A stretch of 64,000 nt of DNA from positions 1,542,538 through 1,606,537 of the forward strand of contig CAJINV010000015.1 of NCBI GenBank assembly GCA_905178155.1, given 5' to 3'. Shown here in pieces: positions 455 to 64,000 of the stretch; the first letter of the stretch is position 1; each line of letters begins with the position of its first letter. The position numbers and the translations under genes were made by a program. The DNA is from Amoebophrya sp. A120 (lineage: Eukaryota > Protista > Dinoflagellata). The notes under the pieces are model-generated. The model was given only the letters and a program-made list of their open reading frames with translations. It was not told where the DNA came from and did not search any database.

Positions 455-572
455 CATCGCAAATCCCAGAACACGACTAGAGAACGCTTTTCATGGGGCT
501 TCGCATGAGAATTTTTTTTGGCATGCAGATTTGCATGACAGCTCTGGGATGGGGACGTTTTTACACAGGATA
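455..572. mobile_element. Truncated introner, family D (one TIR only)
   Basis: Matches the reverse complement of the first ~120 bp of element 23946-24224 and ends GGGGACGTTTTTACACAGGATA; the other half is replaced by unrelated sequence. Confidence 0.8.
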
Positions 573-1256
573 TGCGACCGCGGCGTTTTACCGAACCTTC
601 CGCGGGAGGAACCGAAACGAGAGGAACGATCCGCTAGCACTGACAAAGGGGAGATCAAGGCTGTATTGGGTTCTTTTTGTGCTTGTCCTACAGGTATGAC
701 ACGCATGATCTCATACATTAAGTCGCATGGTAAATGAATTTCACTTTTCCAACCAACGCATGACAAGTTAGTAACTCTGTCGTGTGCAATGATCTACTAC
801 AGGTTCCCTCGCGGTGTTTACGACATGAACCAGAATTATCAAATGCAAAAATGTCTGGGTCTGGAAACTTGTGATGCTGGGTGGCGTCTCATGATGAGGC
901 TACAAATGCTGGCTCAGCATGACAAGTTTCTGAGCTCCTAGGTGTTCCCTATTCTGCATGACAAACTGCGCTTCTGCATAACAGAGAAACGAAGCTCTTG
1001 GGTAACTTGCATGACAGATTTCAGAGTCATGCTAGACAAGTATGACAAACATGAATTCTTCCAGACCCAGACACTTTTACATTTGATAAGAATCAGGGCG
1101 GAAAATTGCTGTTCACAAAAGAGCGGACCGTCGTCGGCCGCAATGAGTCCGACTCAAAACCAGAAATTCCAATGTTCTCCTCAAGTTACCAAGACAAGCG
1201 AAGAGGCTGGAGTTTAGACCCGTGGGTGGGAAAACAGGTAGAGTTTACAATTTGAA
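573..1256 (+). CDS. Probable 3' part of an unknown gene (frame not resolved)
   Basis: Exon-like GC-rich segments separated by a GT-AG intron (694-802) and introner 837-1088. Confidence 0.3.
837..1088. mobile_element. Introner family A
   Basis: TIR TATCAAATGCAAAAATGTCTGGGTCTGGAA / TTCCAGACCCAGACACTTTTACATTTGATA; TSD AGAAT/AGAAT. Confidence 0.92.
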
Positions 1257-6332: not shown

Positions 6333-9300
6333 ATGACGGATCCGGCAATGGTAAGGAAAAAGATTTTGATCCAATAAAGATGCACTTCTTACAACATGAC
6401 GACCTACCATCTGACGCATTATGAAGATGAGAACAAGGCGAAGATGCATCAGCCCCCTCGCAATGTCCTACTTTATTGGAGAAATCGTTTCAAAATCACA
6501 CAAGAATGATGACCATGCTGTGCTTGACAGAGTCTCTGCTGTATCCAAAGATACAACAGTAAGCAAATAAACCACAGGCTCAGACCCCCTCAACCGCGGG
6601 CGGAGAGGGCCAGGGTAGCAAGGGCACTGGAGCGGCTGCGGGCACCGCCGCTACCGGTGGCATGCCGATGGCACCAGCCAACATGCAGGCGATGATGCAG
6701 CAAATGATGGGAAACATGAACCCAAATATCAATATGCAGCAGATGCTCCAACAACAGCAGCAAATGATGGCGATGATGATGCAAACTCAAATGATGGCGG
6801 GTAAATAAGTAATTAAAACTTCTCGTGCAAGAGGATAAAAATTACGCTTGACACAGAACAAAATTTTTCCCGACTAGGTAGTTGTATTGAGTCCGTGCAG
6901 ACAACATTGTTGTTGACGAAGAACTGATTTTTAGCCTTCTGCTCTCTTTTCAGGTACGCTCGGCGGCGCGCAACCGGGTATGATGCCGCAAATGCCAGGC
7001 GGCATGATGATGCCCGGAATGATGCAGTTACCTGGTGCAGCAGCAGGAGCAGGCAACATGCCCGGGGGCCTCCCCCAACTCGGCGGAATGAACCCAGCAA
7101 TCCCGGGTGGAGCCGGGAACAAACTAATAGCTGCCGGTGGTAAAAATCCCGCGGTCGTGGTGCCAACCCCCCCGGCCCCGGTAGTCCCGGCGGCCGCTCC
7201 AACAGAGCTGAAACCCACATCAATAGAACAAGACGGTGGAGCTGCTCCAGCAGGCGACAGCAAAAATGGTCCCAGTAACCCCTTCGGAAATAACGCCTCT
7301 GGGCAGCAGCAGCAGCAGCAAGCAGACAGTGGCACAACTAAACAGGATCAACAGATTATCGCAAGAAAAAACTGTTTCACTGTGAACTTGTGATGCAGAG
7401 AACGAAACACCAAAGTGTTTGTCTTGCTACACCTGCAGGACAATGGATTTTTAAGCGTGTTTTCCCTTGGAAAACGCGCATCGCAAATTTTCTGTGTCCT
7501 GTGTAGCAAACGTGTGATGCAGAAATTGCAAAACCATCACAGTGAAGCAGTTTTTTCGTGGGATACAGATGAATTCGGACCAGAGCTGCCAGCAGCTTGC
7601 ACCGCAGGTGGATTTGAAGCTCGCTTCTACGCCGTTGGTACCCGGGGCGGTGCACCCGGTGATGATGCAGGACGACGAGAAGAGTCGGCAGGCCAACATG
7701 ACCAACGGCAAGCGGTACTACGCCCGGATGAAAAACTACATCCCGCAGAAGGGGTTCGGCTTCGCGTGGTCGCCGGAACTAGAAGAGGAGTACGGCGGAG
7801 ACGTGTTTTATGGAAGTGTCAGAATCGAAATCGACAAAGTTGCAATAGTTTGTGATGCATAAAACGGATGCCAGTTGGAACCCATTTTCCAAATGGCGCA
7901 TGACAAATTTGGGTAGAACCGAAATCCATTTTGTAATGCTGTTTGGGTAAGGAGCACGCCATTTGTCATGCTATTTTAGCAGCCCTATTTCTAGTTCTAC
8001 CCCTCAATAGGCTTACAATCTGTCTCCCTTGCCTACTCTGCAAGACAGGCACTTTGTGGGCTGCATTTTATGCATCGCAAATTATTTCAACCTTGTCGAT
8101 TTCGATTCTGACACTTCCATATGTTTCTGCACTGCTCCGAGGTGCAACGTCCGGAGAACGTGTTTTGCATGGACCCGCAGTCCGGGGCGGTGTCCGCCAA
8201 CATTCTGATGTCCTTCGAGGTGCACGTGAATCCGCGGGGCAAGCCGCAGGCGCGCGAGTTGAAGGTGCTGAAGGACGAGGAGGAGAAGGAGAAGGCAGGA
8301 GAGGAGGTGCCGCTCGTCGAGGGCCGCGGGGAACCGTGGTACCCGGAAAAAGGCGGGGTGCCGCCGCATATGAACTGCAAATATGTCTGGATCTGGGAGA
8401 TTGCGACATTTGTCATGCTAGTCTGGCATGACTCTGAGCTCTGTATTGCGTGCCCGCGAAGAGGTCCTCTTGTCTGTCAGGAAAAGACCCGGCTTCTCAT
8501 GCGGAGGACGCAACTCTGAAGCACGAAAAACTTGTCATGCTGGGGAGCGCATTACAGTGTGCTCGCTGTTCCCTTCCTTGCATCACAAGTTTCCAGACCC
8601 AGACATATTTGCAATGCATACCGCACCTCGCCGGCCTGGCGTTTAAGGGCGGTGACAAGGACAACTGGGGCGGTGGAAAAGACAACTGGGGCGGCGGCAA
8701 GGACAACTGGGGCGGCGGCAAGGGAAACTGGGGCGGCGGCAAGGGCGACAACTGGGGCGGCGGCAAGGGCGACAACTGGGGCGACAACTCCTGGGGCGGC
8801 GGAAAGATGAACAAGGGCGGTCCGGGGTCCTTCGGCATGAAGGGTGGAATGGGCGGCCCGGGAATCGGGATGGGAATGCCGGGTATGGGCATGCCCCCGG
8901 GCATGGGCATGCCGGGAATGCTGCCCGGAGGGGGCCCGGGGGGACCGGGAATGATGCCCGGAATGATGCCACCAGGAATGCCAGGAATGATGCCGCCGGG
9001 AATGCCACCAGGTATATCTTGCAACAATTTATTGAATTTGAAGATCTACATCTGTTTCTGTTTTGCTTTTGAGTAAAGGGCGGTTCTTCCATGCTTGGCT
9101 CAAATCAAAACACGAGAAAGTGATTTCATCTTGAAGACACACAGACACGTCGGTTCTTCGTAGCGGAGGTGAAATTTCGTAGAACAGCAGCGCATCGTGC
9201 GGCCATAGCCACAGCCTGCTGCAAAAGCAAAACAAGTAGGACTTATCATTGTTCCTACTCTCACCTCAGGTATGCTCCCCGGCATGCTGCCCGGCGGCCC

Positions 9301-12300
9301 CGGCGCACCGCCCCTTCCCGGGATGATGCCCCCCGGAGGCGCACCGGGGATGCCCCCGATGCCACCGCAACCCAGCACTACCACCTCCATGTCCGAAGCC
9401 GATCTCTTGGCTGCGGCAGACGCGCAACTCGCGGCCTTAGACAGCATCAAGCCCCCGCCCCCCCCGAAGTCTCCGCGGAGCGGCCGGAACCGCACGGACA
9501 GCGATTTGCCCCCGCCCCCACCCGTGAACCCCTTCGACGCTAACCAGCTGATCCACGCCAACAAGCGAGACAACATGAGCGCGTCTGCGGGCGACAACAA
9601 CAACGTGGCGCTGGATATCAAATGCAGAAATGTCTGGGTCGGGAAGAGTCATGCCGTTTTTGCATGACGCAGAGGGTCTGGCATGGAAGCTCTAGCGTCA
9701 CAGGTTTCGAGAAGCTTCCGCAATGCCGAATTTGCATGACAAAGCCTCCACTTTGGTGACAGAAAGTGGGCAGCTTTTGCTACCTATGCATGAGAGATGT
9801 TTCTGTATTCTGAAATGCGCATCACAAGCTTGTCTTCTTCCAGACCCAGACACTTGTGCAATCCATACTGGAAGTGAACCGCTTTACCGCGATGCTCACG
9901 CAGGGTCTGATGTCGCACAAGGAGAAAGTGGAATCGGTGCACGGGGCTGGCGCGGTGGACCACGTGTCCGCGCAGCCGGCCGCCGACTTCGGGCACGACC
10001 GGCGGGGCCAGCACCAATTCACCGGCAACAACGGCAGGAACGCGTTTCTCGACCCCGACGCGGTATGAAATGCAAATATGTCTGGGTCTGGAATAAAAGT
10101 GGAACTTGTCTTGCACGTCTTGCATTCCTGAAAAATTTGTGTTGCACAGCCAGCAAGAAAGGCGGTACTTTTTCGTTCTGCAAAAACGCAGTTTGTCATG
10201 CGTGCTACGCATCAGACGGGGTTAAGTGTACTTGTCATGCTTGGCTGCACTTGAGAGCGCCAGTCTTATCCAAACTTTAGCATCACAAATTCCAGACCCA
10301 GACATATTTGCAGTTCATACGCGGACGAATTTGACAACCCGAATGGCGTCGCAATGCCCAACCCGGCGCCCGACAGCAGCAAGGACACCGGGGACCTGTC
10401 CCGCCGCAGTCGCGACCGGCGGGACCGACGAAGCCGGGATCGGGGCGGAAAGCGGGACAATTCCCGGGAGCGGCGGCGGTATCGCGACCGGGAACGCGAT
10501 ATGAACTGCAAATATGTCTGGTTCTGCAAACTTGTGATGCTAGTTTGTGAATCCTGGGCGCAGCACTTCATTATGCAGCCACGCATGACATGTTTCATCT
10601 GAGTTCCTATGTGTTTCGCTTCCCGCGTGACAAACTGCATTTTTTTGCATGACAGGTGAAAAGAGGCCGCTTATTTCCTGCTCATGCATTACATTTACAG
10701 ACTTAAGAGTCATGTGAGACAAGCATGACAGACGTCCAGACTCAGACACTTTTGCAATTGATACGTGACGACCGCGACCGGAGGCGGGACCGGGACGGGG
10801 ACCGGCGGCGGAGTCGGGACCGGGAGCGGGAATCTGGCTTCAACAAGGTCGACGAAAGGAAGAAGGAGATTGGCAAGCTGGTTGCCACCCGGGGGCAGTG
10901 GGCCGAGTACGTGCACGCCGGCGGGACCTACTGGGTCCACGTGTTGACAAAAGAGCGGACGAACGAAAAGCCGACGGATTTTGAGGTACAGAAGATACTT
11001 AAGTATAGGTAGATGAACGACCACCTCCCACTTGGCAGCTTACTGCTTCGGAATAAATGAAGTTTCGTTCATCTTGCCAGCAGACTTCGCGGAATTGATA
11101 AATGAAGTTTTGTAGGTCAACTACATCTTGTCATTTAGATAAATTTTTTCGAATACCGATGTACAGGAAGGGTTGGCTTTTTTGAAAAAGATGTTGTAAA
11201 AACAGCCGCGCGGCGACCCACTTCACCGTCGGTACTTTCACAACGAACTCCAACAACAGGACCGTATCATCAATGTGATGAAAATAAATCGCATAATCAT
11301 GTTAAAACAGGTCCGTGCGTCCCGCGACTCTTCCGGCAAAACCCGAGCGCATGGGGCCAACGATCCGGCCTGTGTGTATATTCAAAACGTTCCCTATGAG
11401 AGTGCACAACTCCCCCTCCCCCTCATTTGCCATGCAAAATCCCAAATTCAGTTGCTACCTTGTGGCACCGCGTGCATGACAAATTCCGGAAATCCAAACA
11501 ATACTACACTCGGAGCACGAACCTGTCATGCACCGGGTCCATCTGTACGTAGTGTTTGTAATCCTGTTGATGCCATACAAATGAGGGGGAGGGGGGTTTG
11601 TGCACTTTCATATTTCCCTCACGTGGACGCAGGTGGAGCTCCGCCAGCATTTTCAGCAGTTCGGCACCATTCTGTCCTGCGACGCGCCGTATCAAATGCA
11701 AATATATAATCTGGGTCTAGAAGAATGGAAGTCGAAATTTGTCATGCTTGTCTGACATCACTCTCAAGTCTGTCATGCACCAAAAGCCCTACTTTTCTGT
11801 CATGCACAAGCTCACTTTGTCATGCAGAAAAGCCAAGACTCCTGTAGCACCTGCACCCCCAAAACTTGTCATGCTTGCCAGTCAATTGAGGCGTCCTCGT
11901 CTTTCTCAACCAGCATCACAAGTTTCCAGACCCACAGGACATTTTTGCATTTGATACGCCGGCCAGTCTGAACGAACCGGGCGTGAACCGCGGCTACGCG
12001 TTTGTGACATTCACGTTATCAAAATGAAAAATCCCCCCTCCCCATATTGAAACGGAAACTTCTGTTGCTGGATTTGTGTACACAAATCAGCCCTGTCTTG
12101 CAGCGAGGCACTACAGGCAAAGCCTCAGGCTGCGTAGGGGTGTTTTGTTGTAGGCGCTTGGCATAAGAGAGGCCTGCCCTGTAGGTGAAGCAGCATTACA
12201 AATCGCCTCCATACGGCGGCGGATTCTTTGGGTTTGCCTTCTTGCAAGGCAGATGTGATTTGTGACCTCAAATCCGCAACGCAAATTCTTGGACACATAC

Positions 12301-14807
12301 CTTTTCGATATGGGGAGGGAGGATTTTTCCTCTCAATACACGTCCGCGGAGGAGGCGAAATTGGCGCAGTTGACCATGAACGGCTTCCCCACCATCGACG
12401 AAAACAACAATCAAAAGGTCATTCAGGTCGCCATTCGTGGCCAGCGCAACATGATCGGAGGGGCACCCGGCGCCGCAGGAATGGGCGGAGGTACTAATAC
12501 TGGGATAATGGAAATAGTAAAACAAGACGACAAAGATAATGAAGGTGAATTTCAAACAGAAAGAACAGAATTCCATTTCAGTATCTCATCAAAAAACCAA
12601 AAATGCTATTGAAGTAGATGAAAGCACGCTCGTCTTGTAATAATCCCATGGTGATCTTGCTCGGGTAACAACTGCACGAGCACGACAGCGAACTGCAGAG
12701 CATGATCAGTCAGTGTCCAAAAACACGTCCGTCAGAAGGAAGTTGTTGTGCTGCTGCGGTGTAAAAATAAAGTAGAACAATTCTGCTGTCGAACATAAAG
12801 GGGCAGTACAACATCAAACCTGTTCCAAAAATTCCCCACATCCCACATGACAGTTATTGAGAGCATGTTTGACCCGGAAACCACGGCGATGCTGGACCAG
12901 CAATCGCAAATTCACATGCAAATGAATCTACCTCCCCAAAGCCAAAGCCAAAATCCGCTTTTGAAGAGCAGAGGTACTATGATAAATGCTCGAATGAACA
13001 TATGACAGTGCACAACTCCCCCTCCCCCTCATTTGTCATGCAAAACACCAAATCCAAACTGTGTTTCTTGGCATTGTTTGCATGACAAACCTACCAGAAG
13101 CTCAAACAGCACTTCACTCCTGTGGAAATTTGTCATGCAAAAGAACCGGCATTCTTGCTGACCCTTGTATTGCCGTTCATGCTAGACAAATGAGGGGGAG
13201 GGGGAATTGTGCACTCTCATAGAACACCACCAGCAATATTAATCCTCTTCTAGATCCGGCGACTGCCATGGGTCCGACCACCAACCTGCCCTCCAACGCG
13301 AGTATCCAAGAAAAAAACGTTGTAGGTGTAACTTTTTTGGAGGAGCAGCATTACAAATTTGTCTGGCATGACAGCAAAAACCTGTCATGCTACGGGAAAA
13401 CGCCGCTGAATGGACCCTACGATGCATGCTAAGCATGACAGACGCAGTCATCTTGTAGATTGCGCATCACAAATTTACACTAACAGCGTTTTTTTCTTGG
13501 ATAGCGAGCGCAAACCCAGACAACCCGTATGGAATCGGCATGCAGCATATCAAATGCAAAATAAATGTCTGGGTCTGGAAACTTGTGATGCTGGGTGGCG
13601 TCTCATGATGAGGCCACAAATGCTGGCTCAGCATGACAAGTTTCTGAGTTTCTAGGTGTTGCCTACTCTGCATGACAAACTGCGTTTCTGCATCACAGAA
13701 AAATCGACTGGAGCGCTTGGGTAACGTGCATGACAGATTTAAGAGTCATGCCAGACAAGCATGACAAACATGCACTCTTCCAGACCCAGACATTTTTGCA
13801 CTTGATGCAGCAACAACCGGGCATGGCAGGAGCAGGGGGCAACATGAGTACTAGCAGTACCGGCCATCTGATGATGCCACCGAACAGTAATTCCTTCGGC
13901 GGGAGTGGTGGAAATGGAATGCGTATGCATAATGCAAAAGTATCGTACTAGTAGAAATTGTCGTGTGGTAAATTTCTTCTGCGTGAGAAATGAATGCTCC
14001 AATCCGGATTTACCTCGACCTCGAAAAGTGGTAGATTGCATGACTGCGATTTTTTTACTACGAGTGTGATACTTTTGCAATGGATAAAAAAAATGCAAGG
14101 CTCTAGTTCTATGCCGGACTACCCCTTCGCCCCAAGCGCGACCAAGGGCATGGGGAAGGCGCAACCGGGCAAGGAGCACTTGAAGAACATCAGCTGCATC
14201 TACTGGATGGCCGGGCACTGCCACCGAGGAGAGTCGTGTTTCTACAAGCACGACCCGTTGGAATTTAACACGAAACCCATGGGCGCGTCCCGCCCCAACT
14301 TGTCTGCGCATCAAGGCGAGCACCAGGTGAGCAGCTTTAACCAAGCGGTGGCGGAGCTGCAGCTGCAACAGCAGGGCCTCGCACCTGGTGGATCATCTTC
14401 GGGGGGTAAAGGTGGCTTCCGTTCTTCGAACAACCCGAACAACATGCCTATCCACTGCAAGTATGTCTGGGTCGGGAAGGGCGCAACTTGTGATGCGCAT
14501 TTCAGATCGCAGAAAAATCTGTCTTGCAGAAAGAGGAAAAGTAGTTGTCTATTTTTGGTCGTGGTGAGAGCGGATTTCTCATGCAGAGTGGGCATCGTGA
14601 AGCTCTCGAAGACCCTGCGATGCTGGTCCCTGCATGCCAGACACTCTTGGTCATGCAAAACCTGCATTACAAACATCTGCATTCATCCAGACCCAGCCAT
14701 ATTTGCAGTGCATAATGCCACTCGGGGGCGCGGGCGGAATGGGAATCGCGGGACTGGGCATTGGTTCGAAAGTGGTTTCCACGGGTGATTATGACACGGG
14801 GAGCTAG
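6333..14807 (+). CDS. Multidomain RNA-binding protein: Gly/Pro/Met low complexity, cold-shock domain, RD-rich tract, WW-like, RRM, CCCH zinc finger
   Basis: GT-AG introns 6351-6577, 6801-6953, 9012-9269 and 10986-11310, plus 14 introners. Spliced product gives KGFGFAWS..GDVFLHCSEV (CSD), WAEY..GTYWVH..T.EKP (WW-like), VYIQNVPLTWT..RGYAFVTF (RRM) and C-x7-C-x5-C-x3-H. The junction across ~12490-12800 is unresolved, so the CCCH part could be a separate gene. Confidence 0.75.
7357..7565. mobile_element. Introner family E
   Basis: TIR TATCGCAAGAAAAAACTGTTTCACTGTGA; TSD CAGAT/CAGAT; removal gives QDQQMNSDQ. Confidence 0.92.
7809..8121. mobile_element. Introner, singleton family with near-perfect TIR
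   Basis: TIR TATGGAAGTGTCAGAATCGAAATCGACAA; TSD TGTTT/TGTTT; removal restores CSD motif DVFLH. Confidence 0.93.
8369..8620. mobile_element. Introner family A
   Basis: TSD CCGCA/CCGCA; family A TIRs. Confidence 0.92.
8657..8800 (+). repeat. Coding tandem repeat (K(G)DNWGGG)n, 21/24-nt units
   Basis: About 6 copies of GACAACTGGGGCGGCGGCAAG-like units. Confidence 0.85.
9616..9867. mobile_element. Introner family A
   Basis: TSD CTGGA/CTGGA. Confidence 0.9.
10064..10319. mobile_element. Introner family A
   Basis: TSD CGCGG/CGCGG. Confidence 0.9.
10500..10763. mobile_element. Introner family A
   Basis: TSD CGCGA/CGTGA. Confidence 0.88.
11395..11612. mobile_element. Introner family B
   Basis: TIR TATGAGAGTGCACAACTCCCCCTCCCCCTCATTTG; TSD TTCCC/TTTCC; splits the RRM. 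Confidence 0.9.
11690..11956. mobile_element. Introner family A (diverged)
   Basis: TSD CGCCG/CGCCG; inside the RRM. Confidence 0.88.
12017..12338. mobile_element. Introner family C
   Basis: TIR TATCAAAATGAAAAATCCCCCCTCCCCATAT; TSD CACGT/CACGT. Confidence 0.9.
13001..13221. mobile_element. Introner family B
   Basis: TSD GAACA/GAACA. Confidence 0.9.
13303..13503. mobile_element. Introner family E
   Basis: TIR TATCCAAGAAAAAAACG; TSD GCGAG/GCGAG. Confidence 0.9.
13548..13807. mobile_element. Introner family A (3' end ATG)
   Basis: TSD CAGCA/CAGCA; close copy of 837-1088. Confidence 0.9.
13924..14086. mobile_element. Introner family F (TSD eroded)
   Basis: TIR TATGCATAATGCAAAAGTATC / GATACTTTTGCAATGGATA; removing element+5 nt keeps the frame. 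Confidence 0.75.
14449..14714. mobile_element. Introner family A
   Basis: TSD ATGCC/ATGCC. Confidence 0.9.
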
Positions 14808-16069: not shown

Positions 16070-16300
16070 TATGAAAGTGCACACCTCCCCCTCCCCCTCA
16101 TTTGTCATGCAAAATCCCGAATCCAGCTGCTGCCTTGTGATTGTATGTAGCACTGTTTGCATGACAAATTCTGGAAGCCCAAACAGTACTTACTACATAA
16201 GGCACATAGATTTGTCATGCATAGGCTCCATGTGCGCTGGTGTTTGTATTGCTGTTCATGCCATACAAATGAGGGGGAGGGGGAGTTCTGCACTTTCATG
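16070..16300. mobile_element. Introner family B (3' end ATG), upstream of the next gene
   Basis: TSD TTCAT/TTCAT. Confidence 0.9.
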
Positions 16301-16359: not shown

Positions 16360-16625
16360 TATGCATTGCAAACATGTCTGAGTCTGGAAGGACGCGAGGT
16401 TTGTCATGCTTGTCTGGCATGACTGAAGAGTTTGTGATGCGTGTCCACGAAGAGACCCTTTTGAGTACGTGTCACACAAAGACGCAGTTTATCATGCGGA
16501 AAACGCAACACTAAGCAACGTAGATATAATTTCTCATGCTTGGCTGCGCATTGCAGAGCATTTTGCACTATTCCCAACCCAGCACTACAAGTTATTTTCA
16601 GATCCAGACATATTTGCAATGCATA
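16360..16625. mobile_element. Introner family A, upstream of the next gene
   Basis: TSD TCTTC/TCTTC. Confidence 0.88.
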
Positions 16626-16679: not shown

Positions 16680-17001
16680 TATCAAAAGGAAAAATCCCCC
16701 CTCCCCATATCGAAAAGGAAGCTGTGATGCTGGATTTGCGTACACAAATGAAACTTGTCTTGCGGTAGAGGACTGCAGGCCCCTATCGAGCCTGGGGAGA
16801 GAGGTTTTTGGCTAGGGGCTTAGCATGAAAAACGTCCGCTCTGCAGGGCCTTCAGCATGACAAACCGCCTGCATAATGTGGCGGCTATCTGTGGAGTTGC
16901 CTTCTTGCAAGACAAATGTGATTTGTGACCTCAAATCAGCAACACAAATTTTCGGAAACATACCTTTTCAATATGGGGTGGGGGGATTTTTCCTTTCAAT
17001 A
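16680..17001. mobile_element. Introner family C, 16 nt before ATG 17018
   Basis: TSD CTTGC/CTTGC. Confidence 0.9.
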
Positions 17002-17017
17002 CTTGCAGCTCTCGACC

Positions 17018-51900: not shown

Positions 51901-54900
51901 AAAGCCGCGAAGAGGGAGCGGATCTTGAAAATGAAGCGAAATAAGGAGGAAAAAAAAATCGTAGAAGGAGCGAAGAACAAAGGCGATCCTGTAGTTGACC
52001 ACGGTGATGCTGGTGTAGTCCTCTCTCCGGGGAAAGAAAAGTCCGGCGGAGGTCCTCTCACGACCGCTGGAAATGATGAAGAAGCATCTGCCGGTCGTGG
52101 TCCAGACGAAAGGAAGAAAGGTCTTGTAGATGGGAAGAAAAATCCCAAAAGGCCCGTCTCTCCGCCGCCGGAATCTGTTCAACCAGGATCACTAGACGTC
52201 GGTGGACAAGGAAAAATAAATAGTAATCAACAAGACCAGAGGACCCCGCCCGGCAATAATAGCAGCAACAAGCCCCCGGCGCCTTCTAAAAACCCTACTG
52301 CAAATAAAGCAAACTCAAGCAACATCTTCCGAGTTCCGCACCTGCACCAACTTCGACGGCAGCAGCAGAGCCCGGCGGCGGACCGAACTTTGATCCACAT
52401 GTCGCAGCGCTCGGAAGTGGTCCAGGTAGATGGGAAGCCGGTCGTCGTGACGCGCACCAACTCCGCCGGCGCGTGCATCGTGCTCCCGTCGCGGCACTAC
52501 CACAACCAGGGAGGGCCGCACCGCGTGCAAACGGAAGCGGTGCTGGCGCAGGAGGATCCAGAGCAGCGGGACCAGATCCACAAGCTCGTCGTGTACTGGG
52601 TGAAAAACTACAACAAACTAACCCCGGGGTTGGAGCACTTGCCGCAGTCCTTCGAAGTGAAATCCCACGACCCGGACAAGAAATCAGGCACTCTGTTGAA
52701 GTATCCTGTGCAAAAGTAATATCGTACACGTAAGTACTAATTGCGTTTATGCATTACAAATCTCCTTCCCGAGGTAAAGCAGCATGACAAATTCCATTTG
52801 TCACGCTGAGCTAATTTGTATTGCAATTACTACTAGGACGATACTTTTGCAGTTCATGTGAAGCGGTTGGGCGGGAAGAACGGGGCGGTGATTGACCCGA
52901 AAAACTTGGCGAAGGAAAACTTCATCGCGACCGGGAAGCTCTTGTCCATTTTACACCAGTTCCCGAACAAGCGCGAAACGTTGCTGTCCCGTTTGAATCT
53001 CTGGAAGCTGAAGCAGCTCGATTTGCACCTGCGCATGGGGCAGAAGACGCGGGAGGTGATGGCGCGGCACTACGGGGAAGTGTTCGAGAAACACAAAGAC
53101 TATCTGCAAATAGGAAAAGCTGGCGCTGGTCGTGCTGGAATAAATCAGGACGGACAGAACATGAACTCCGCGGGACGACCGCCGGGAGCTGCGCAAGTAG
53201 GGGAAGGTCATGCGCAGCAAGGAGCACCGCCACAGCCGGGCTCTACTGTTGATCAAGACGACTCCGAGACGATGGAGCATAAATATGGCGTTCTCAAACG
53301 TTACAATTACATTCTCAACTGTTACATGCGTTTGTGATGCAAGAATGTCAAAAGTTAAAGTAGTGAAAGGGGTGACCCTGAAAGTGCCCGTCTTGCATGA
53401 CAGATGGGGTGCAGATTCTCAGCCTATTTGGCCTTTCGAGAATTTGCCATGCGAAGCAGCTTGATCGTGTCGATTCTGCTTGTGATTTTGCTTGACAAGT
53501 CATGCAGTTGAGAGCGTAACATTTGCGAGCCCCATAACAAAAAACAGAGACTCATCGAGGACTTGAAGCAGCATACCCGGGAGAAGCTCACCCACCCCTT
53601 GCTCGCGCAGGGAGTGGAGGCCATCGCCGCGCAGACCTATTTGCGCCGGGATTGCCGTCGGGGCAAGCAGTCAAGAGGGCACGAGTTGACAGAGTCCTTG
53701 ATTTTGCCGGCCGGGAAACGCGGGAAATTCATACTTCGCGACGCGGAGGACAGTGAGGAAGTCGACGATGAGCAGGTGGACAATAAGGTAGATCGGGGGA
53801 AGTCGAAGTTGCTGAAACCGGTGGGCGTGGCCGTCGTAGTCTCTGAAAATGACTCGGCAGCTGCAAGTAGTTCTCCTTCCTCTTCAGCGGTTGGTTTCAT
53901 AGAGCAGCAAAGAAACCTTCCAAATGAGGACGACATGGAGGTGGACCAAGAGGGAAATGTAGATCCTGGGGCTTCTGCCGCAGAGAGAACGCAAAAATTC
54001 GGCGTTGAATCTAAACAAGAAGCCGATCCTCGTCCAGAAGATCACCTTTCTGGTTCTCCAAGTGGAACAAATGCCGCCGATTCATCGTCTGCTCGGGTAG
54101 TACAGATGAAGAAGAAACTACCGAAAAACAATAGGAAAAGTTCTCAACCCCTCGTTCTAATAGACAAGCACGATGTGCGTATCGCTACGGGGGGAACGTG
54201 GACGGTAAACCTCTTCGAATCCAACAACGCCGGCGATTTTTGGGAAACGAACGAAGCGTTTCGCCAATTGATGACGCGGGAGTCGCAGAACAAGAACGAG
54301 CAAGCGCGGCAGTGCAAGTTGGCCTACGTCGAGCGGAAGAACAAGGAACTCGAGGAGATCCGCCGCACGAGCAAGACGCACGGGTGGGGCATCGTGCGGA
54401 TCATGGACCCGGTGGGGAACGTGCGCGAAACCCGACGGAGGATGGGGCGAGAGAAGAAGGGGGACGCAGCTGAAGATAATTCACCGGAAGGTGCTTGTGA
54501 TATTGATCCCAAAATTAACCCGCTTGATCTCGACTTGGATGACGATAAGGATATCTCAGACGGAAATGGAGAGGGTGAAGATCGAATAGGTATTAAATCT
54601 CCAGCAGTGCAACTACAGCAAAAACGATCATTATCAAAGCAACCGGAGAAGATGTTCGAGAAGAACAAACGGCCCGCATCTCCTTCCGTCCGCGCCGGAA
54701 TCGACTCCCCGGTCATAGAGGACGAGGATTTTGACGACCTGTTAGACGATGAAGAAGACGCGTTTGACGAGGACGCGCTCTTCACTGTGGGCACAGATTT
54801 GAACGACATCCTGAAGCCGTCCGTGCGGGAACAGAGAAAAATAGATCTGCTGGCTGCAGGCCAGAGCAAAACTGGTCCTGCAGGTCGTGGTGGGTTAAAA

Positions 54901-56073: not shown

Positions 56074-56699
56074 CGGCGTCGCTCGGCCGCAGAAGTTGAG
56101 GTTGAGCAAGCTGATCTTTCATCGCATTGCGATGCGCGTACAGGAGTAGGCTTTTTACGCTTAACCCGATTTTCCGCGCTGAAGATTCGTTGATGGAAGT
56201 GGACAGCGCGATGAACATGAAAGCGTCAAATCATTATGATTCTTCTGCAGCTGCCCTTTAGACTCGATCATGCTAGTACAAGCAAATAATAGACCACGTG
56301 GCGCTGGAGATCGTTGTTGAAACGAGCATCACGGTAGTAGTACTTTGCTCGACTGCTTTTCGAGGCGCTGCTCCATGATGCACCGAGAAAATAAACGCGG
56401 TGTTCTCCTAGAAGATGTTCCTGCTCTTCGTTGTTTTGCTTCTACACAAAAATCGCAAGATGAAGATGAGTACGCAGCAATAAAAGTTTGGTTTCTGCAG
56501 CAACTACTACTACAACTTACAATTGCAAAATGGAAGCAGAATTAGCCAAATGAAAGTAAGTACATGAAATGTTGTGATGCAGATGCAGTAGTATTCTGAT
56601 TTTCTCTGTTACGAGTTGCTTTACTTTCGTCGCTGGAAAACTCCAGCCGCGGTTAAACACGAGTTCAAAGTCAAAAGCATAAAGCAAGACAGCAAAACC

Positions 56700-59600
56700 A
56701 TGGCCGACTCGTTTCCGTCTGCTGGAACTACGCCATTACTGGCTTCGGGCAACCAACGCGCAACGTCGTCCTCGGACCCGAATGCCGGCGGCGCGACAAC
56801 CGATAACCCCCATGATTTTTCCACTACGAGCACGAACAGCGCCCCTGTGGTGACCAAGGAGGATTTGGACCAATGGATCCACCACCTGACCTCCAAGCAC
56901 CTACAGCTCCCCTTGAAGCACGCCGAAAAGCTGTGCGACCACGCGAAATTGATTCTCTCGCAAGAGTCCAACGTGGCGGAAGTTAGGACACCGGTGACGA
57001 TCGCAGGTGATATCCACGGCCAGTACCACGATCTGATGGAGCTTTTCAGGATATCGGGCTCACCGCCCGACACCAACTATTTGTTTCTCGGCGATTACGT
57101 AGACCGGGGGTACTTTTCCGTCGAGTGCTTTTCGCTCCTTCTGTATGCAATAAAAAAACTGTGTCAGTGTAACTTGCTTTGGCTGACAGCATCACAAATT
57201 TGCTCTACATGACAGAGAAAGCCTGTCATGCGTGGTTTGTAAGGGAAAACACACATGAAAAGAGGACGGCGTGGTTGTCTAGCATGACAGGTGTAACTCT
57301 GTTGCATGTTCTGCATCACAGGTTTACACTTACACAGTTTTTTTCTTGCATATTCTGTGCTACAAGATCCGGTACCCAAGACGAGTCACGCTCTTGCGCG
57401 GAAATCACGAATCCAGGGCGATTACACAGGTAGAAGATGGTTTGGATTTTTTTTCTTTGCATACTTATACCCATAGAAATTTCGAATCATCTTTTAGTCG
57501 TACCGCATGACAAATAAAACGCTTCAAATGAAACAGGTGTACGGATTTTATGACGAGTGCATGCGAAAATACCCCTCCGCAACGACGTATCCGAAGAGAG
57601 AGAAGAAGAGCAGGAGGTGGATCTGTCATGCGCGGCAAGCATACAGTAACAGTTGCAGTTACTCATCATGAACACCAGAAAAGAACCGTTAGTATGCTGT
57701 CGTCACGTTTAGGTTCGTTTAGAGGACGTAAGCACGTTGTTTGATCGGCATGACAGACTCCACCTCTCCTCTGTTTCATTTCTCCCCTCCCATACGGGAA
57801 ACATGTGGCGCACGTTCACCGATCTTTTCGATCACCTCCCGCTCGTTGCGGTCGTCGAGAACAAAATTTTTGCCCAGCACGGAGGTTTGTCGCCGAATTT
57901 AGACACCATCGACCAAATCCGGGAACTAAACCGGGTCCAAGAGGTGCCGCACGAAGTATCAACTGCAAATATGTCTGGGTCTGGGAGATTGCGAGATTTG
58001 TCATGCTAGTTTGGCATGACTCTGAGCTCTGTATTGCGTGCCCTCGAAGAGCTCTTTCTGTCTGTGATGCAAAAACGCAGTTTCTGAGAAACTGCGTTCT
58101 TCTCATGCAGAGTACGCAACTCTGAATCTGTCTCTGAACCACGGAAAAACTTGTCATGCTGGGCAGCGCATTACAGTGCGCTCACGCTTCCCTTTCTTGC
58201 ATCACAAGTTTCCAAACCCAGACATATTTGCATTTGATACGAAGGTCCGATGTGCGACCTGCTGTGGTCCGATCCGGACGAACGCGCGGGGTGGGGCATC
58301 AGCCCCCGCTATCATTTGTAACCACGTCCCCGCCCCAGAGTTGTAATGCTAATCTGCATGCTGAAAATGTTTCTCATGCGGAGACCCTTGAGAAGCAGTT
58401 GCTAGTCGCGTCTTGGGATAACTTGTGATGCTAGAAGCAGCGCGATATGCTAGATCTGTGATGCTGCTGAACAAGCCAAACAGGATTACACTACGAGGCC
58501 AAACTTGTCATGCGCAACAGCAAGAGCTGACAGATTTGTCTAGCAGATTTCCCAGCTTGACTCTGGTGTGGGGACGTTTTTACTCAGGATACCCGCGGTG
58601 CGGGGCACACTTTCGGGTCCGATGTGTCCGCCAGGTGGAACCATTTGAACGGACTGTACTTGATCGCCAGGGCGCTTATGGAACAGGAAAGATGGAGGGC
58701 GGTCTACCTGCGGCGCTTTCACATGAATTTTCAGCGTGTGTTGCGATTTTACATCGATGCGTTTGATAATTTGGAACGAAGGTGTTGAAAGCCAGAGAGA
58801 GTGCCACGTCTACCGATTTCACGTGATGAAATCGGTTGGTATTTAGATAGATCCCTAGCGTACGTGTTATGCATACGATGCACCAGCATGATGAGAGAAC
58901 AAATTACAAACTTGTTGCAGCAGTTGAAAGCCAAAGTCGTTCGGTCCGTTAGCTTTTTCCTTTCCATAAAGCACCAACTGGTAATGGAGGGATTCAACTG
59001 GAGTCACGACAAACAGGTACTAATTTTATGCGTATATAAAAAAGTTTCTGCAGTTTGTCATGCACAAGTGCGAAGATATGCAAAACATTGAACATGCGTC
59101 ACTGCATGACAAGTTTGTTCCAAAAGATTATCACAACTTCTCCAGGTTGTCACCATCTTCTCCGCGCCAAACTACTGCTACCGGTGCGGCAACCAGGCCG
59201 CTATCCTCGAGGTATCCAGCACGATTTCCGGCCCCGCAGCCGACACAAACACCTCCACGGCGGTATGGGGTTCTCAAATGTTACATTCTCAACTGTTACA
59301 TGGATTTGTAATGCAAGAATGTCAAAAGTAAAAGGGGGAAGATTACGCCTTTTGCATTACAGGTTTGGCGCAGAGTCTAGTGCTACCTAGCGCGTCGAGA
59401 ACTTGTCATGCGACGCAGCTTGATGGTGTAGATACTGATGAGCGTTTTGCATGACAAATCGCGTAACAGTTGAGAATGTAACGCTTGAGAGTCCCATAGG
59501 CGGAAGACGCGGGATTGAACACGGGTGGCATCATGGAGCAGAACCTGGCCACCTATGCAAGAAAAAAACTGTGTAAATGTAGTAACTCTGTGACGCAGAA

Positions 59601-60271
59601 CATGCAACAGAGTCACACCTGTCATGCCAGACAGCTCGGACGTCCTCTTTTCATGTGTGTCTTCCCTTGCAAGCCGCGCATGACAGGTTTTCTCTATCAT
59701 GTACAGCAAATTTGTCATGCTGTCAGCCAAAGAAAGTTATACTAACACAGTTTTTTTCTTGGATACCACCTCCACGACCAACAATATGAACCAAAATCTC
59801 TCCACCGGGATCGAGTCACACTTGCAAAACACAACCGCCTATCAAGTGCAAAAATGTCTGGGTCTGGAAGAATGCATGTTTGCCATGCTTGTCTGGCATG
59901 ACTCTTAAATCCGTCATGCACGTTACCCAAGTAGAGCTCCATTTTTCTGTGATGCAGAAACGCAGTTTGTCATCCAGAATAGCCAACACCTAGAAAGAAG
60001 CTCAGAAACTTGTCATGCTGAGTCAGCACTTGTGGCCTCATCATGAGACGCCACCCAGCATCACAAGTTTCCAGACCCAGACACTTTTGCAGTTGATGTC
60101 GTCTCCGACACCCGACCCGGGCCAAAGTGGGCCAGTTTTCTGCAGTTCGATTCCGCGCCGAGGAGAGGGGGATTGCAGCCCATGAATTTCGGCTTAGACG
60201 ACGAGGGAACGTTTTTGGCGGACGAGCCGTACCCGAGTCAGCTGATTCCGAAACCCGATTACTTTTTGTGA
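56700..60271 (+). CDS. PPP2C: Ser/Thr protein phosphatase 2A-type catalytic subunit
   Basis: [69 protein letters not shown] and C-terminal PDYFL*, all recovered after removing 8 introners and GT-AG introns 57430-57536 and 59017-59145. Confidence 0.92.
57144..57352. mobile_element. Introner family E
   Basis: TSD TTCTG/TTCTG. Confidence 0.92.
57588..57794. mobile_element. Degenerate introner (purine-rich TIR)
   Basis: GGAGGTGGATCTGTCATGC / GCATGACAGACTCCACCTC inverted pair; TSD CGACG/CGGGA. Confidence 0.75.
57957..58239. mobile_element. Introner family A
   Basis: TSD CGAAG/CGAAG; close copy of 8369-8620; removal restores VPHEGPMCD. Confidence 0.93.
58310..58591. mobile_element. Introner family D
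   Basis: TSD CCCGC/CCCGC; removal restores ISPRGAG. Confidence 0.92.
58677..58968. mobile_element. Degenerate introner
   Basis: TATGGAACAGGAAAG / TTTTCCTTTCCATA; TSD GCGCT/AAGCA; removal restores RAHQ. Confidence 0.78.
59264..59498. mobile_element. Introner family G
   Basis: TSD GGCGG/GGCGG. Confidence 0.9.
59554..59765. mobile_element. Introner family E (inverted relative to 57144-57352)
   Basis: TSD CCACC/CCACC. Confidence 0.92.
59840..60098. mobile_element. Introner family A (inverted relative to 837/13548/23551; 3' end ATG)
   Basis: TSD CCGCC/TCGTC. Confidence 0.9.
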
Positions 60272-61575
60272 TTTTGCACGAAAACGAACTGAGCTGAAGC
60301 TTCTGTAAGTAAGTGTGGTTCTGCTTTCTGCTGTGAATGCGTTTTGCCTCCATGGAAATGTTTGAGAAAGTCGTGAAAAAATGAATGATTTTGAAAGGTT
60401 GCACTTTCATCTTGACGCTGATTTTTCCTATTTGAAGCTGAGAATTATTCTATTCCTGGCAGCATTGGAGTGTGAATGAATGGTTTGTAAACTAGGAAAC
60501 GAAGATGGTTGTTGTGGCAAAGAACCTAAAACATTTCATAGAAAGAAAAGCAAAGTCTTTTCACTTTTTCCAATGCAAATTCACGTAGATGATGACGCCG
60601 AGTACTTACTTGTTGCTAAATTAATCCTCTGCACTAGCTCCGATGAATGTTGAAGTTGATGTACATACACGACACAAGAGTCTTTACTCTACTGTGGTCA
60701 CAACAACCGCCGCGGAAGTAGATGAAGACGAGTGCGAGTGGCTTCCGCAAGAGAAGACTGAAAATGTTACTGTCTAAACGCAAATTTTCTGCAGGCTCTG
60801 AAGGAAGATCATTTGATCTTTTTGGTTTTCATGTCCACTCTCCTGGCATGATGCTCCAGAGATCCTCCCCCTTTCCGTACTACAGGTAGGTTGCGGGGGT
60901 CCTGCCGGTCTGCAAAGAAACGGCAGCTGCAGCCCCGCCCGGATCTTGTCTTTGATGTTCTTTTTTTTGTAAGTGCCTCCAGTTCCAATTTCCAAGCACG
61001 ACCGTCGGCTCAATAAGCAGGACGACCGCTGTCGTCGTGATAGATCCATTCTTCTCGATCCTTGTACGTGCTAGTGCAGTGGCACTGGCAGCAAGTGCAG
61101 CAAAAGGCAAAAAATCTTGACTCACGACAAAATTTTACAGCGCGCGAAAAGAATAAGAAAGCCGAGAATTCGTTTCGCGTGCTTGAGTTCTGCGTTGCTT
61201 TTCCAGTTTCCCTTTTCTTTTTTGATTTTACAGCGACACCATGCTTTTCCATAGCTAGTCTCACGATTTCTAAATTAATTTTTCACCTAGCAATTTGTTC
61301 GCAATCTTCATCTTGATCTCGTAGTTTTCTGTGTTAATGAGTCGATCACAACTTGAAAGAAGAAAAACAATGACACAGCACCGTGCTATCGCAGCGGATG
61401 GTCGATTGTTTTCAATCCCACTATTGAATGGCGCAAATTGATCAGAGGAGTCGTTTCCGCAACGGCAGCCCCAAGCGGTGACGACCGACAAGAAGTAGAG
61501 TCCCCTCCTCGACGCCACGTGCATATTGCGGCGGCGAAAAGTTACTAGACTCCCGACCGTCACGACCTTTTCGAA

Positions 61576-64000
61576 ATGTACCAGTACCCGCAAAACCCCC
61601 ACGGCGGCCTAGCCGGTTTCCACCATATGGCCAACGCCAACCTTATCCCCGGTTCCGGCTTACAAATCCCGGCAGGCCAAGCACCACCCATGCCCGGGCA
61701 AGTCGTCCCGCCGCAATTACTGGGACGAGGAATGATCGGGGCCAACCTGGGCAGCAATCCTATGGTGCCACCGCCACCACCTCCAGCATCCGGCATGAAC
61801 TACCCCGACGTTGTCAGAACAGCTTCAAATGCCAACCAAACTTCTTACTCGTCCACATCCCAAACCCTCCTCACCCCTTCCCTGGCCCAAGCGACCGGCG
61901 TCGTGCAGAAACCGGCCCCGAACCTGACCGCCCGGTCGCAAGTCAGCTGCATCTACTGGTGCTACGGGCACTGTGTTCGCGGGGATTCCTGTCACTACAA
62001 GCACGACCCCAATCACTTCGAAATCTACAAGGGCCAGTATGAGAGTACACAACTCCCCCTCCCGCCCCTCATTTGTCATGCAGCACCCGACAACATCTAG
62101 TCGCTGCCCTGTGGCACTGTTTCCATGACAAATTCCGGAAGCCCAAACAGTACTACATCAGGTATATCAATTTGTCATGCATATGCTCCACGTGTGCTGG
62201 TGTTTGTATTGCTGTTCATGCCATACACATGAGGGGGACAGGGAGTTGTGCACTCTCATAGCCAGCCGCCGGGCTTGCCGCCCCCCTCCGGCGGCCCCCG
62301 CCCGCAAACCGGCATGCACGCGGCCGGGGCGGTGGCAGGAGCTGGTGGAACCACTGCGGGCGGGCTTAAACCAGGCTTGCTCCCTGCGGGCATGTATCAA
62401 CTGCAAAAATGTCTGGGTCTGGAAACTTGTAATGCTGCGTTGGGAATAGTGAATCAATGCTCTATAATGCGCAGGCAAGCATGAGAAATACAAATATCTG
62501 CGCTTCTTTATGACAGGCAAAAGGGTCTGTTCTTGGACACGCATCACAAACTTTTTGGTCATGCCAGACAAGCATGACAAAATCTCAAATCTTCCAGACC
62601 AAGACATTTTTGCATTTGATAGCATGGTCGCGGGACAACCGAATGATATCCGGAACGCGATCTCGGGCGCGGAGAAGGAACTGTCGACGAAGGTTTTGGC
62701 CAGCATAATACCCGGCTTTGCCGGATCCACAGGGACTGCTGCAGGGACCAACGGGAAGACATTAAACGGGGGCGACCAGCAAGTGGCCCTAGACGAAGCG
62801 GCACTGAATCCTCTGCTACTCGGGCAACAAATCCTGGTTAACGCAGCGGCGGTGGCGGCGACGAGTATAATAATGTGTTTTTGAGTGATCATCAACATCT
62901 GTTTCTGTAGGAATGCTTGGTCAACATCCGCTCGTCTAGTTTGGGCTTAGGGTTTAGGGTCACCAGAAAAAGAATTTCAAATCACAAAGACACACATCAT
63001 CACCCCCACCAGGTACGGCCCAGTTGACCGGTGGGCACCTCGGGCTCGCGACCGCGCCCATGAAACTCACCGATTTGAACAACATCGACTGTGGCCAGCA
63101 GCGGTACGTTGGCATTGTGAAGTCGTTTGACAAGTTGAAGCAACTCGGCTACCTGCAGGCGGACGTTTTATCTAATCGCTTCATCGGTTACGACACCCCA
63201 CAGAAAATGGAAGTGGCGGTTATGAAAGAGGATTTCCAGCGGCTGAACCTGTACGCGGGCTGCATCGTTTCCTTCCAACTCGCGATATTCGCGCCGGACC
63301 ACAACGGCAGCTTCCGCGGCAAGGAAGAGCTGGAAGAAGCGGCGGCGGTTGGGAGTAGTGCTGGGTTGAAAAAACTGCCCTCGGTCATGGAGCTCGGCGG
63401 GGAGAAGAAACCAATCGTATAAATGAAGATGGATTCTCATTCTTTACTTACACGGCTTTTTTTTTTGATTTGGTGTCAAGCTCATGCACTGTATTTGAAC
63501 CGTTTGAAATTGTTGATGAGGTAAATCAATCACTACATTCGATTTCGAAAGACGTTGTGCAAGAAAAGCAGGAGTGCAAAATAGCATCAATTTCATCAAC
63601 CTCAACTTTTATTCCAGGCCGAACAAGTCGAGCTGGTCGACCCGATGTTGTTCGTCCCGGGCATGCCGAAGGTCGTAGCCAAGAAAAAAACGAAGAAGAA
63701 CCGGCAAGCCCTGGACGAACTGGAAAAAAACCTGCCAAACGCGATCGACTTGGCGCAGATTCTGAAAGACGTGGAAAACGTGGCGGAATTGGTTGAAAGC
63801 GAGCTCTTTGTCGTGGAAAAAGAAATTTTAACCCGGGACTTAAAGAACCTCGAGGAGCTGAAACGTGAAGAGCGAAGGTCGTTGAAGAGAATGAGGCGGG
63901 AACTGAAAGAAAAGGCGAGCAAAGATACAACTGGAGGCCGCGGCGGTGACAAGGACAAGAACAAAGGAGCTGCTGATGATGACGACAAGAGACGGAGTAG
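61576..64000 (+). CDS. CCCH zinc finger plus cold-shock/OB-like RNA-binding protein (runs off the window end)
   Basis: SCIYWCYGHCVRGDSCHYKHDP; RYVGIVKSFDKLKQLGYL..CIVSFQL; GT-AG introns 62865-63012 and 63417-63617; 2 introners; ATG at 61576/61577. Confidence 0.72.
62038..62260. mobile_element. Introner family B
   Basis: TSD GCCAG/GCCAG. Confidence 0.92.
62395..62621. mobile_element. Introner family A
   Basis: TSD GCATG/GCATG. Confidence 0.92.

Follow-up and report, generated by a model that had tools for sequence, protein, structure and literature searches.

Interrupted genes and repeated elements of the window

The sequence analyzed here is a stretch of 64,000 nucleotides (nt) of the dinoflagellate Amoebophrya sp. 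A120 (assembly GCA_905178155.1, contig CAJINV010000015.1, positions 1,542,538 to 1,606,537 of the forward strand), which is referred to below as the window and is numbered from its first letter. Its genes, among them one for a PP2A-type phosphatase on the + strand (56616-60272), an ALG6 gene and a gene with an RRM domain, are interrupted by short repeated elements. Complete copies number 54, lie between 837 and 62621 and are accompanied by a few fragments. With lengths of 147-411 bp (median about 257) they add up to 13,895 bp, or 21.7% of the window, which means that a fifth of it is transposon sequence lodged within the coding exons of essential genes. The phenomenon is the already known introner system published for this same strain.

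The elements were collected by two scans. In an unbiased one, inverted 14-mers agreeing at 11 or more of their 14 positions, with a spacing of 100-700 bp and an exact 5-bp direct repeat at their flanks, were sought with the terminal bases left free; it returned 33 matches versus 0-2 in five Markov-shuffled controls, and 31 of the 33 start with TAT and end with ATA or ATG. A scan anchored on TAT and ATA likewise gave 33 matches, versus 0-1 in 20 controls. The set was then enlarged by BLAST with the copies found, a relaxed scan and inspection of the flanks. An earlier note on this DNA, made from the sequence alone, had estimated about 60 elements of 147-411 bp, roughly one per kilobase, which is right to about 10%, the size range being the same. 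It had also distinguished at least seven families; clustering gives nine multi-copy clusters (A1 with 13 copies, A2 with 9, C with 6, B with 5, G with 4, E and F with 3 each, D and D2 with 2 each) and seven singletons. Both orientations are present within clusters A1, A2 and B.

At their 5' ends, all 54 elements carry T followed by A, and 53 of them T at the third position, the remaining one beginning with TAG; at their 3' ends they carry ATA, except for six that end with ATG. These ends form terminal inverted repeats (TIRs) composed of TAT, variable positions 4-8 and then a run of A (108 ends). Each element is flanked by a 5-bp target-site duplication (TSD), exact in 39 of the 54, matching at four of five positions in 11 and at two or three in four, and the target 5-mers have no consensus. 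Stop codons in all three frames are found in 49/54 elements. The last base is G in the copies starting at 13548, 16070, 39399, 39722, 52702 and 59840, while the first base T is never altered on the 5' side of the transcript; this asymmetry is biased and unproven, given that part of the scanning admitted ATG and not CAT.

The abundance of the elements was evaluated in the whole assembly (115,520,608 bp) with a 22-nt pattern of the family-A TIR, allowing up to 2 mismatches. It occurs 15,120 times in forward and 15,083 times in reverse orientation, compared with 0 and 1 occurrences of the control, the same pattern reversed, so that family A alone has about 15,000 genomic copies. The elements have the anatomy of miniature inverted-repeat transposable elements (MITEs), with TIRs, a constant 5-bp TSD, small size, no open reading frame and many copies, in agreement with the earlier proposal that they are MITE-like DNA transposons. 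They share with known MITEs the fixed length of the duplication, a size of 150-400 bp, subterminal repeated motifs and a high copy number, and differ from them in lying within coding exons, where they are tolerated through removal from RNA. Among 41 genome-wide copies of the subfamily of the element at 57957, the TSD is exact in 29, matches at four of five positions in 6 and at three of five in another 6. About 90% of these copies fit the consensus in almost every column, on which grounds the idea of a stem more conserved than the element interior was rejected for this subfamily. Positions 4, 5 and 7 of the family-A TIR are hypervariable, with around 40-60% agreement to the consensus compared with about 90% elsewhere in the element; they covary as a few end "haplotypes", and a single copy frequently has a different haplotype at each end. 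One element on contig C4 (L021:2561-3308) has family-A ends and a TSD without mismatches (CAAGT), but measures 748 bp, roughly triple the length of most copies.

The elements also share an internal motif. The commonest 7-mer of the window is GCATGAC/GTCATGC, with 129 occurrences versus about 8 expected by chance (our own estimate). When a G variant is included, the motif has 181 sites in the window, 161 of them inside the 54 elements. Its 13-nt consensus, AAAYYTGTSATGC, is represented in 52/54 elements, in every multi-copy cluster and in both ordinary GT-AG introns of the PP2A gene, and its sites often occur as inverted pairs that lengthen the hairpin an element can form. The motif possibly serves as a subterminal repeat bound by a transposase, or else as a signal at the RNA level. 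Neither the GTCATGC nor the GCATGAC string is found in the main text of the 2021 description of the A120 introners (Farhat et al. 2021, BMC Biol 19:1, PMC7789003), where no family-specific motif is reported, and the presence of this motif in nearly all elements may be an addition to the published description. The two GT-AG introns, which lie on the + strand at 57430-57536 (one GCATGAC motif inside) and 59017-59145 (a TTGTCATGC...GCATGACAA pair inside), may themselves be decayed elements.

Restoration of the host genes

To examine the coding capacity of the interrupted genes, exons were searched one by one and frames were checked by translating 65-nt junction stretches. The PP2A gene consists of 11 exons separated by eight elements and the two GT-AG introns. 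When every element is removed together with 5 nt, the eleven exons fall in a single frame that closes with a C-terminal DYFL and a stop, and the motifs GDIHG, GDYVDRG, RGNHE, HGG, VPHE|...|GAG, RA|HQ and SAPNYC are rebuilt. In the Pfam Metallophos profile, exon 1 corresponds to positions 2-48 and exon 4 to positions 89-135. Three successive exons of ALG6 match the Pfam Alg6_Alg8 profile in profile order (4-63, 82-197 and 339-360). The element at 43610-43864 (cluster A2, TSD TACCA, the one that starts with TAG) lies between ALG6 exons, and that at 46111-46368 (cluster A1, TSD CTTCT) adjoins the ALG6 exon encoding LFSWQVHEK on its upstream side. The RRM is interrupted by three elements: after RNP2 by 11395-11612 (cluster C, TSD TTCCC/TTTCC, 4/5), then by 11690-11956 (cluster A1, TSD CGCCG) and, just after RNP1, by 12017-12338 (cluster D, TSD CACGT). 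The earlier note had claimed that invariant motifs are rebuilt in PP2A, ALG6, the RRM and a CSD; frame, Pfam order and element positions bear this out for the first three, while the CSD was not located. Finally, the element at 33197-33457 (cluster A2, TSD GAAAG) connects open frames of 1381 and 2336 nt. The 699-aa exon that follows it (33463-35559) obtained zero matches in a homologous-protein search of a collection apparently without this organism.

Removal of the elements from RNA

Evidence at the RNA level was obtained from assembled contigs of the RNA-like sequencing run X3 placed on the window at 90% likeness, which cover ten elements, some of them via length sums only. DNA-like runs contain 0.77-0.80 of the sampled words, versus 0.44-0.45 in four runs of a second study, X3 among them, a lower share that is as expected for transcripts without elements. 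The depth of X3 falls to 0 at 58700-58899, within the element 58677-58968, and at 60900-61099, which is intergenic. Furthermore, the two GT-AG introns of the PP2A gene are absent from the same X3 contig that lacks the elements. The zero depth in element and intergenic sequence and the loss of both ordinary introns argue that X3 represents processed RNA rather than DNA.

The most direct junction is provided by X3 record 12, in which letters 780 and 781 join position 62032 to 62261. The 228 nt skipped equal the 223 bp of the cluster C element at 62038-62260 (TSD GCCAG) plus 5. A second element of this adjacent gene, at 62395-62621 (cluster A1, TSD GCATG), is approached by a contig piece that ends at 62389, after which the record continues. 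For the PP2A gene, X3 record 9 (2,067 nt) covers 56700-57138, 57799-57950, 59143-59258 and 60103-60861 with zero mismatches, the start at 59143, by the second GT-AG intron, having a 3-nt ambiguity. The letters between these pieces number 127, 191 and 123, which are the sizes of the small exons predicted when each element plus 5 nt and the two GT-AG introns are removed (77+50, 66+84+41 and 50+73); the second group occupies positions 879-1069 of the record and the third positions 1186-1308. Contig pieces stop immediately ahead of the left duplication, or one base earlier if the base that follows is ambiguous as well. Loss of an element plus 5 nt is thus seen as a direct join in one case and from one side in several others, and exact length arithmetic gives it for all eight elements of the PP2A gene. 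Altogether, the arithmetic of the X3 records fits element plus 5 nt at 10/10 elements covered.

Along the PP2A gene, the contig breaks off at 57138, immediately ahead of the left TSD of the element at 57144-57352 (cluster B, TSD TTCTG). The next element, a singleton at 57588-57794 with a decayed TSD (CGACG/CGGGA), is removed as 57587-57798, that is, 207+5 nt. It is followed by 57957-58239 (cluster A1, TSD CGAAG), where the contig piece ends at 57950, the leftmost placement, and by 58310-58591 (cluster E, TSD CCCGC), whose removal is deduced by length sum only. At the singleton 58677-58968 (decayed TSD GCGCT/AAGCA) 297 nt are removed (292+5). The contig piece preceding 59264-59498 (cluster F, TSD GGCGG) ends at 59258; the removal of 59554-59765 (cluster B, TSD CCACC) is given by a length sum, and 264 nt (259+5) are lost at 59840-60098 (cluster A1, decayed TSD CCGCC/TCGTC), the contig resuming at 60103. 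It is important to remark that both orientations are removed. The cluster B elements at 57144 and 59554 are opposite to each other in one transcript, and the same is true of the cluster A1 elements at 57957 and 62395 in adjacent transcripts. Removal of one family in both orientations within a single transcript may be an addition to the published accounts.

These contigs show what the earlier note had predicted, namely, precise removal from pre-mRNA with gaps of element plus 5 nt, in the PP2A and the adjacent gene. As contrary outcomes it had named elements retained in transcripts or cryptic GT-AG sites used in their place, which is contradicted for these two genes, and an intact copy of PP2A or ALG6 being the one expressed. 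For PP2A, no element-free copy that could be the expressed one was found, since the exon tested (57799-57950) has a single occurrence in the 115.5-Mb assembly, its nearest paralogues having at most 58% protein identity. The checked transcripts are restored by a removal that ignores the GT-AG rule. Raw reads were also available from two RNA runs carrying the same species label, X9 and X10, which probably derive from another strain. Only one 32-nt family-A TIR was matched by them. The X9 reads of 2026 align at 59840-59871 with 90-95% identity and have uniform flanks unlike those of the window, one of them with AACTTGTCATGC. This suggests that a related element exists in the RNA of what is apparently another strain.

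Junction bases and position of the cut

An exact duplication allows six placements of the junction. In the first 52 elements tabulated, GT-AG is impossible at all six, and the alternative termini GC-AG and AT-AC are possible in one and three elements, respectively. Reading of the flanks by eye led to the same result for GT-AG in the elements starting at 19838 and 43610. The absence of GT-AG ends claimed by the earlier note thus extends to every element, as none of the 54 can be GT-AG, and with GC-AG possible in just one of them the elements do not have the termini of U2-type introns.

While an exact duplication hides the junction, a decayed one makes the cut position readable, and three such cases exist in the PP2A gene. 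At 57588-57794 the letters of the record end at 57586 and resume at 57799, which places the cuts uniquely, with 1 nt lost ahead of TAT and 4 nt beyond ATA. At 58677-58968 the lengths fit 1-3 nt on the left, and only these rebuild the invariant RAHQ. At 59840-60098, 0 or 1 nt on the left is compatible. The three cases have only one placement in common, with 1 nt to the left of the element and 4 nt to its right. Outside this gene, 4 or 5 nt on the left are ruled out by an in-frame stop for the element at 19838-20101 (cluster A2, TSD GGAGA/ATAGA, 3/5).

A model for insertion and removal

It is likely that the 54 elements in the + strand genes of the window are non-autonomous TIR introners that were inserted by a 5-bp staggered cut and are removed, together with 5 nt, at sites that would be set by a hairpin. 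Insertion through such a cut would place the element between two copies of the target 5-mer, and the loss of the element plus exactly 5 nt from RNA would bring back the original frame irrespective of the flanking bases. In the pre-mRNA the TIRs would pair into a long hairpin that brings the exon ends together, and the cuts would be made at a fixed distance from the hairpin base, with 1 nt removed ahead of the 5' UAU and 4 nt beyond the 3' AUA, without recognition of GU or AG. Two element transcripts folded with 10-nt flanks do form long hairpins closing at TAT/ATA, with minimum free energies of -84.3 and -82.8 kcal/mol (z -5.3 and -5.2) and no shuffle as stable. Removal in both orientations implies that the signal must be symmetric, and a hairpin is symmetric; if it is the signal, either orientation of an element would be removed. 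Were the fixed offset correct, the machinery would be of a ruler type, blind to splice-site dinucleotides, to orientation and to TSD decay. We consider it rather unlikely, though worth stating, that a cut fixed at 1 and 4 nt from the hairpin base goes together with AAAYYTGTSATGC acting as a common recognition site for such a ruler machinery or for one transposase. The arbitrary end dinucleotides, and only these, point to a chemistry that would be "non-canonical".

Several points weigh against this model. X3 is classed as RNA by a guess of the software, and its RNA nature is argued from depth and from the loss of the GT-AG introns. The junctions of five of the eight PP2A elements follow from length sums and not from direct joins. 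The 1/4 offset comes from three junctions of one gene, one of them unambiguous and two placed by length arithmetic, and splice sites were drawn as variable relative to the hairpin by Farhat et al. 2021 (PMC7789003). Lastly, within one subfamily the TIR is conserved no better than the interior of the element, so that the copies do not directly reveal selection on the stem once inserted.

Regarding the machinery, it is quite possible, if short of probable, that the elements are excised by the major spliceosome operating without U1 and without the need of a G at +1 or -1, with the hairpin replacing intron definition and UAU placed at +2 to +4. GT-AG introns leave the very transcript that loses the elements, and under the 1-nt left offset each intron begins with N-U-A-U, which resembles GUAUGU at +2 to +4, the first two bases being GU in 16/54. 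The genome has at least eight copies of U6 (98.9-106 bits), in which the ACAGAGA box and the AGC triad are intact. U1 was not found in it, a weak blank given that some 40-50 first-look candidates were scored, yet one that agrees with Farhat et al. 2021 (PMC7789003), who likewise report no U1 and nearly all spliceosomal proteins. U2, whose absence would count against this reading, gave no match in the genome either, an especially unreliable blank (about 40-50 first-look candidates scored). What speaks against spliceosomal removal is that the removed stretch opens with one base and closes with four that come from the target site and are arbitrary, and that no polypyrimidine tract or oriented branch site common to both orientations of an element is possible. 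To our knowledge, spliceosomes tolerate GU-AG, GC-AG and AU-AC only. Removal independent of the spliceosome, by an endonuclease that reads structure and an RNA ligase, is in our view only slightly less probable. It would accommodate the arbitrary end bases, the indifference to orientation, the long terminal helix and the apparently fixed offset from the helix base, and it has a parallel in the nonconventional introns of euglenids, which combine terminal pairing, TSD-like repeats, noncanonical ends and non-lariat circles, and for which endonuclease plus ligase is one of the possibilities proposed (PMC11282704). On the other hand, no candidate enzyme is known, arbitrary flanking exon bases cannot make a bulge-helix-bulge, and there is no mutual information between the variable TIR positions and the flanks. 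Guide-type pairing of TIR positions 4-7 with the flanking exon was rejected by the same analysis (maximal mutual information 0.11 versus a 95% null of 0.15).

Excision could also take place in DNA, as for the internal eliminated sequences of ciliates, with transcripts then made from an element-free template. Ciliates are alveolates too and carry out such excision with base precision, but the X3 contig also lacks the two GT-AG introns and hence represents processed RNA, coverage by the DNA-like run X1 extends over the elements at each of the listed boundaries, and the assembly holds the interrupted copy of PP2A only, as tested with exon 57799-57950. Moreover, one intact copy of the TSD is left, which is unusual for cut-and-paste transposases. 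All this makes DNA-level excision very improbable. Even harder to credit, with nothing found in its favor, is that the elements are kept in the mRNA, or that nearby cryptic GT-AG sites are used, because the arithmetic of element plus 5 nt is exact at each covered element and because of the stops in all three frames of nearly all elements.

Origin of the duplications and search for a mobilizing enzyme

The constancy of the 5-bp duplication implies a staggered cut at the DNA level. Spread by reverse splicing does not fit, since the flanking 5-mers are local target copies that restore the local frame, while a copy borne by RNA would carry the 5 nt of its donor. The enzyme responsible for the cut was sought with Pfam profiles. 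The profiles used, RAG1, hAT dimerisation, hAT-like RNase H, DDE_Tnp_4, MULE and piggyBac, all remained without a significant genomic match in an exon-wise search that is weak for element-split genes. The transposase classes addressed in this way were RAG1/Transib, hAT (two domains), Harbinger, MULE and piggyBac, each of them blank or non-significant. Two weak hAT-like matches correspond to a DEAD_2 helicase and a PPPDE-peptidase-like protein. The length of the TSD also suggested an integrase, and the genome contains 30 matches to the integrase core (rve). This candidate was rejected, because all eight rve-bearing frames tested look like retrotransposon pol, most of them of Copia type (rve + SH3 + RVT_2) or Gypsy type (RVT_1 + RNase H + integrase) and one with rve alone.

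A locus with TAT...ATA ends and the TSD GACGA (C1:15330547-15338898; L016:148-8499) was considered as an integrase-bearing TIR element and turned out to be a Copia-type element nested in an introner. It has long terminal repeats of about 220 bp at about 249-471 and 8217-8441 of L016, its own TSD (CTGAG) and an rve-SH3-RVT_2 frame. Nesting of this type could mimic the A120 "TIR element with Copia/Gypsy homology" reported in 2025. No long element of autonomous size with such ends exists in the window, where both matches to that description are cross-pairings of separate copies, and neither the Pfam searches of the genome nor the long-element scan of the window revealed an autonomous partner.

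Relationship with known introns and introners

The introners of strain A120 were described by Farhat et al. 2021 (PMC7789003), who counted 29,850 repeated introns representing 17% of the genome, and they were revisited by Gozashti et al. 2025 (PMC12130899). Introners with inverted and direct repeats and non-canonical splice sites, which the earlier note had mentioned for Amoebophrya, are indeed these same elements. In the 2021 description, the inverted repeat consists of TAT, about 7 less conserved nt and then at least three A, and direct repeats of 3-5 nt span the exon/intron borders, whose position is marked as unknown. The window elements have the defining traits of A120 introners, that is, ends made of TAT, a variable stretch and an A-run, direct repeats at the borders and removal from RNA without GT-AG. 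The window elements and the published ones (PMC7789003, PMC12130899) alike have the TAT repeat, the border repeats, RNA-backed non-canonical sites, thousands of copies, no internal transposase and a predicted RNA hairpin, and nothing is different in kind. The window adds no new kind of element, as the phenomenon, the strain, the TAT repeat and the copy numbers have all been in print since 2021 and were taken up again in 2025. The possible additions are of detail: the direct repeat is here a constant 5 bp instead of 3-5 nt, one junction offset fits the decayed duplications where the paper leaves the border unknown, and a 13-nt motif is present inside nearly every element of the window. The 1/4 junction rule, the AAAYYTGTSATGC motif and the removal in both orientations may go beyond the published accounts. 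In this respect, the PP2A gene (56.6-60.3 kb) constitutes a compact test bed, with eight elements that represent six clusters or singletons and lie in both orientations, three decayed duplications by which the junction can be fixed, and two ordinary introns as internal controls.

Among other systems, the euglenid nonconventional introns (Milanowski, Guminska et al.; PMC11282704) are similar in their noncanonical borders, terminal pairing, TSD-like repeats and suspected MITE origin, a resemblance of working and not of membership. Their pairing involves CAG/CTG at +4 to +6 and -8 to -6, whereas here UAU/AUA would lie at +2 to +4 and -7 to -5 under the proposed offset; circles have been shown for them and they do not form high-copy sequence families, in contrast to the high-copy families of this syndinian host. 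The introners of Micromonas, Aureococcus, Polarella and further eukaryotes (Gozashti et al. 2022, 2025; Roy et al. 2023) are also intron-creating transposable elements, very numerous and often provided with TIRs and TSDs. As described, however, introners of that type carry or co-opt canonical splice sites, which none of the 54 elements can do in the form of GT-AG. The internal eliminated sequences of ciliates are likewise short and very numerous, and they interrupt alveolate coding sequences from which they are precisely removed, but they leave the DNA through a domesticated transposase, while removal takes place here in RNA.

Distribution of the elements along the window

The remaining elements, identified like the others by the scans, BLAST, flank inspection and clustering, are given here by cluster with their TSDs; strand is unassigned in this list, and a single 5-mer denotes an exact duplication (5/5), here and above. 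Cluster A1 further includes 837-1088 (AGAAT), 8369-8620 (CCGCA), 10064-10319 (CGCGG), 10500-10763 (CGCGA/CGTGA, 4/5), 13548-13807 (CAGCA), 16360-16625 (TCTTC), 23551-23802 (TGAAG) and 39399-39652 (CCGAG). Cluster A2 is also represented by 9616-9867 (CTGGA), 14449-14714 (ATGCC), 17048-17309 (CTACA), 20493-20754 (CCTGT), 31594-31854 (CCCCG) and 37460-37721 (AGACC). The other cluster B elements are 7357-7565 (CAGAT), 13303-13503 (GCGAG) and 23247-23460 (AAATC). Cluster G is formed by 7809-8121 (TGTTT), with a TIR matching at 20/20 positions, the shortest element of the window, of 147 bp, at 24259-24405 (TGCGA/TGCGC, 4/5), 45236-45397 (TTCAA) and 52702-52858 (TGAAG). To cluster E belong 20131-20409 (GATGC) and 23946-24224 (GTTTG/GTTCG, 4/5), to cluster F 46632-46867 (CATTC) and 53284-53536 (ATAAA/ACAAA, 4/5), and to cluster D 16680-17001 (CTTGC). 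Cluster D2 is composed of 30805-31090 (TGGGT/TGGGG, 4/5), which has a weak TIR (10/20), and 37096-37416 (CGTCC/CCTCC, 4/5).

Singletons outside the PP2A gene are found at 22586-22981 (396 bp; GCAGA/GCCGA, 4/5), 35566-35821 (TCACT), 39722-40132 (CGACT), which is the longest element with 411 bp, 47352-47675 (ATTTG/ATTTC, 4/5), with a D-like TIR, and 50220-50558 (TCCCA/TCCCT, 4/5), with an E-like TIR. Cluster C is completed by 13001-13221 (GAACA), 16070-16300 (TTCAT), 19465-19691 (GTTGA/GCTGA, 4/5) and 44976-45191 (GCTGA). Unlike clusters A1, A2 and B, this cluster has all its six copies (11395, 13001, 16070, 19465, 44976 and 62038) in one orientation with respect to the + strand genes. Upstream of the first complete element, 449-572 is a truncated E-like fragment that retains the right end only (...CAGGATA).

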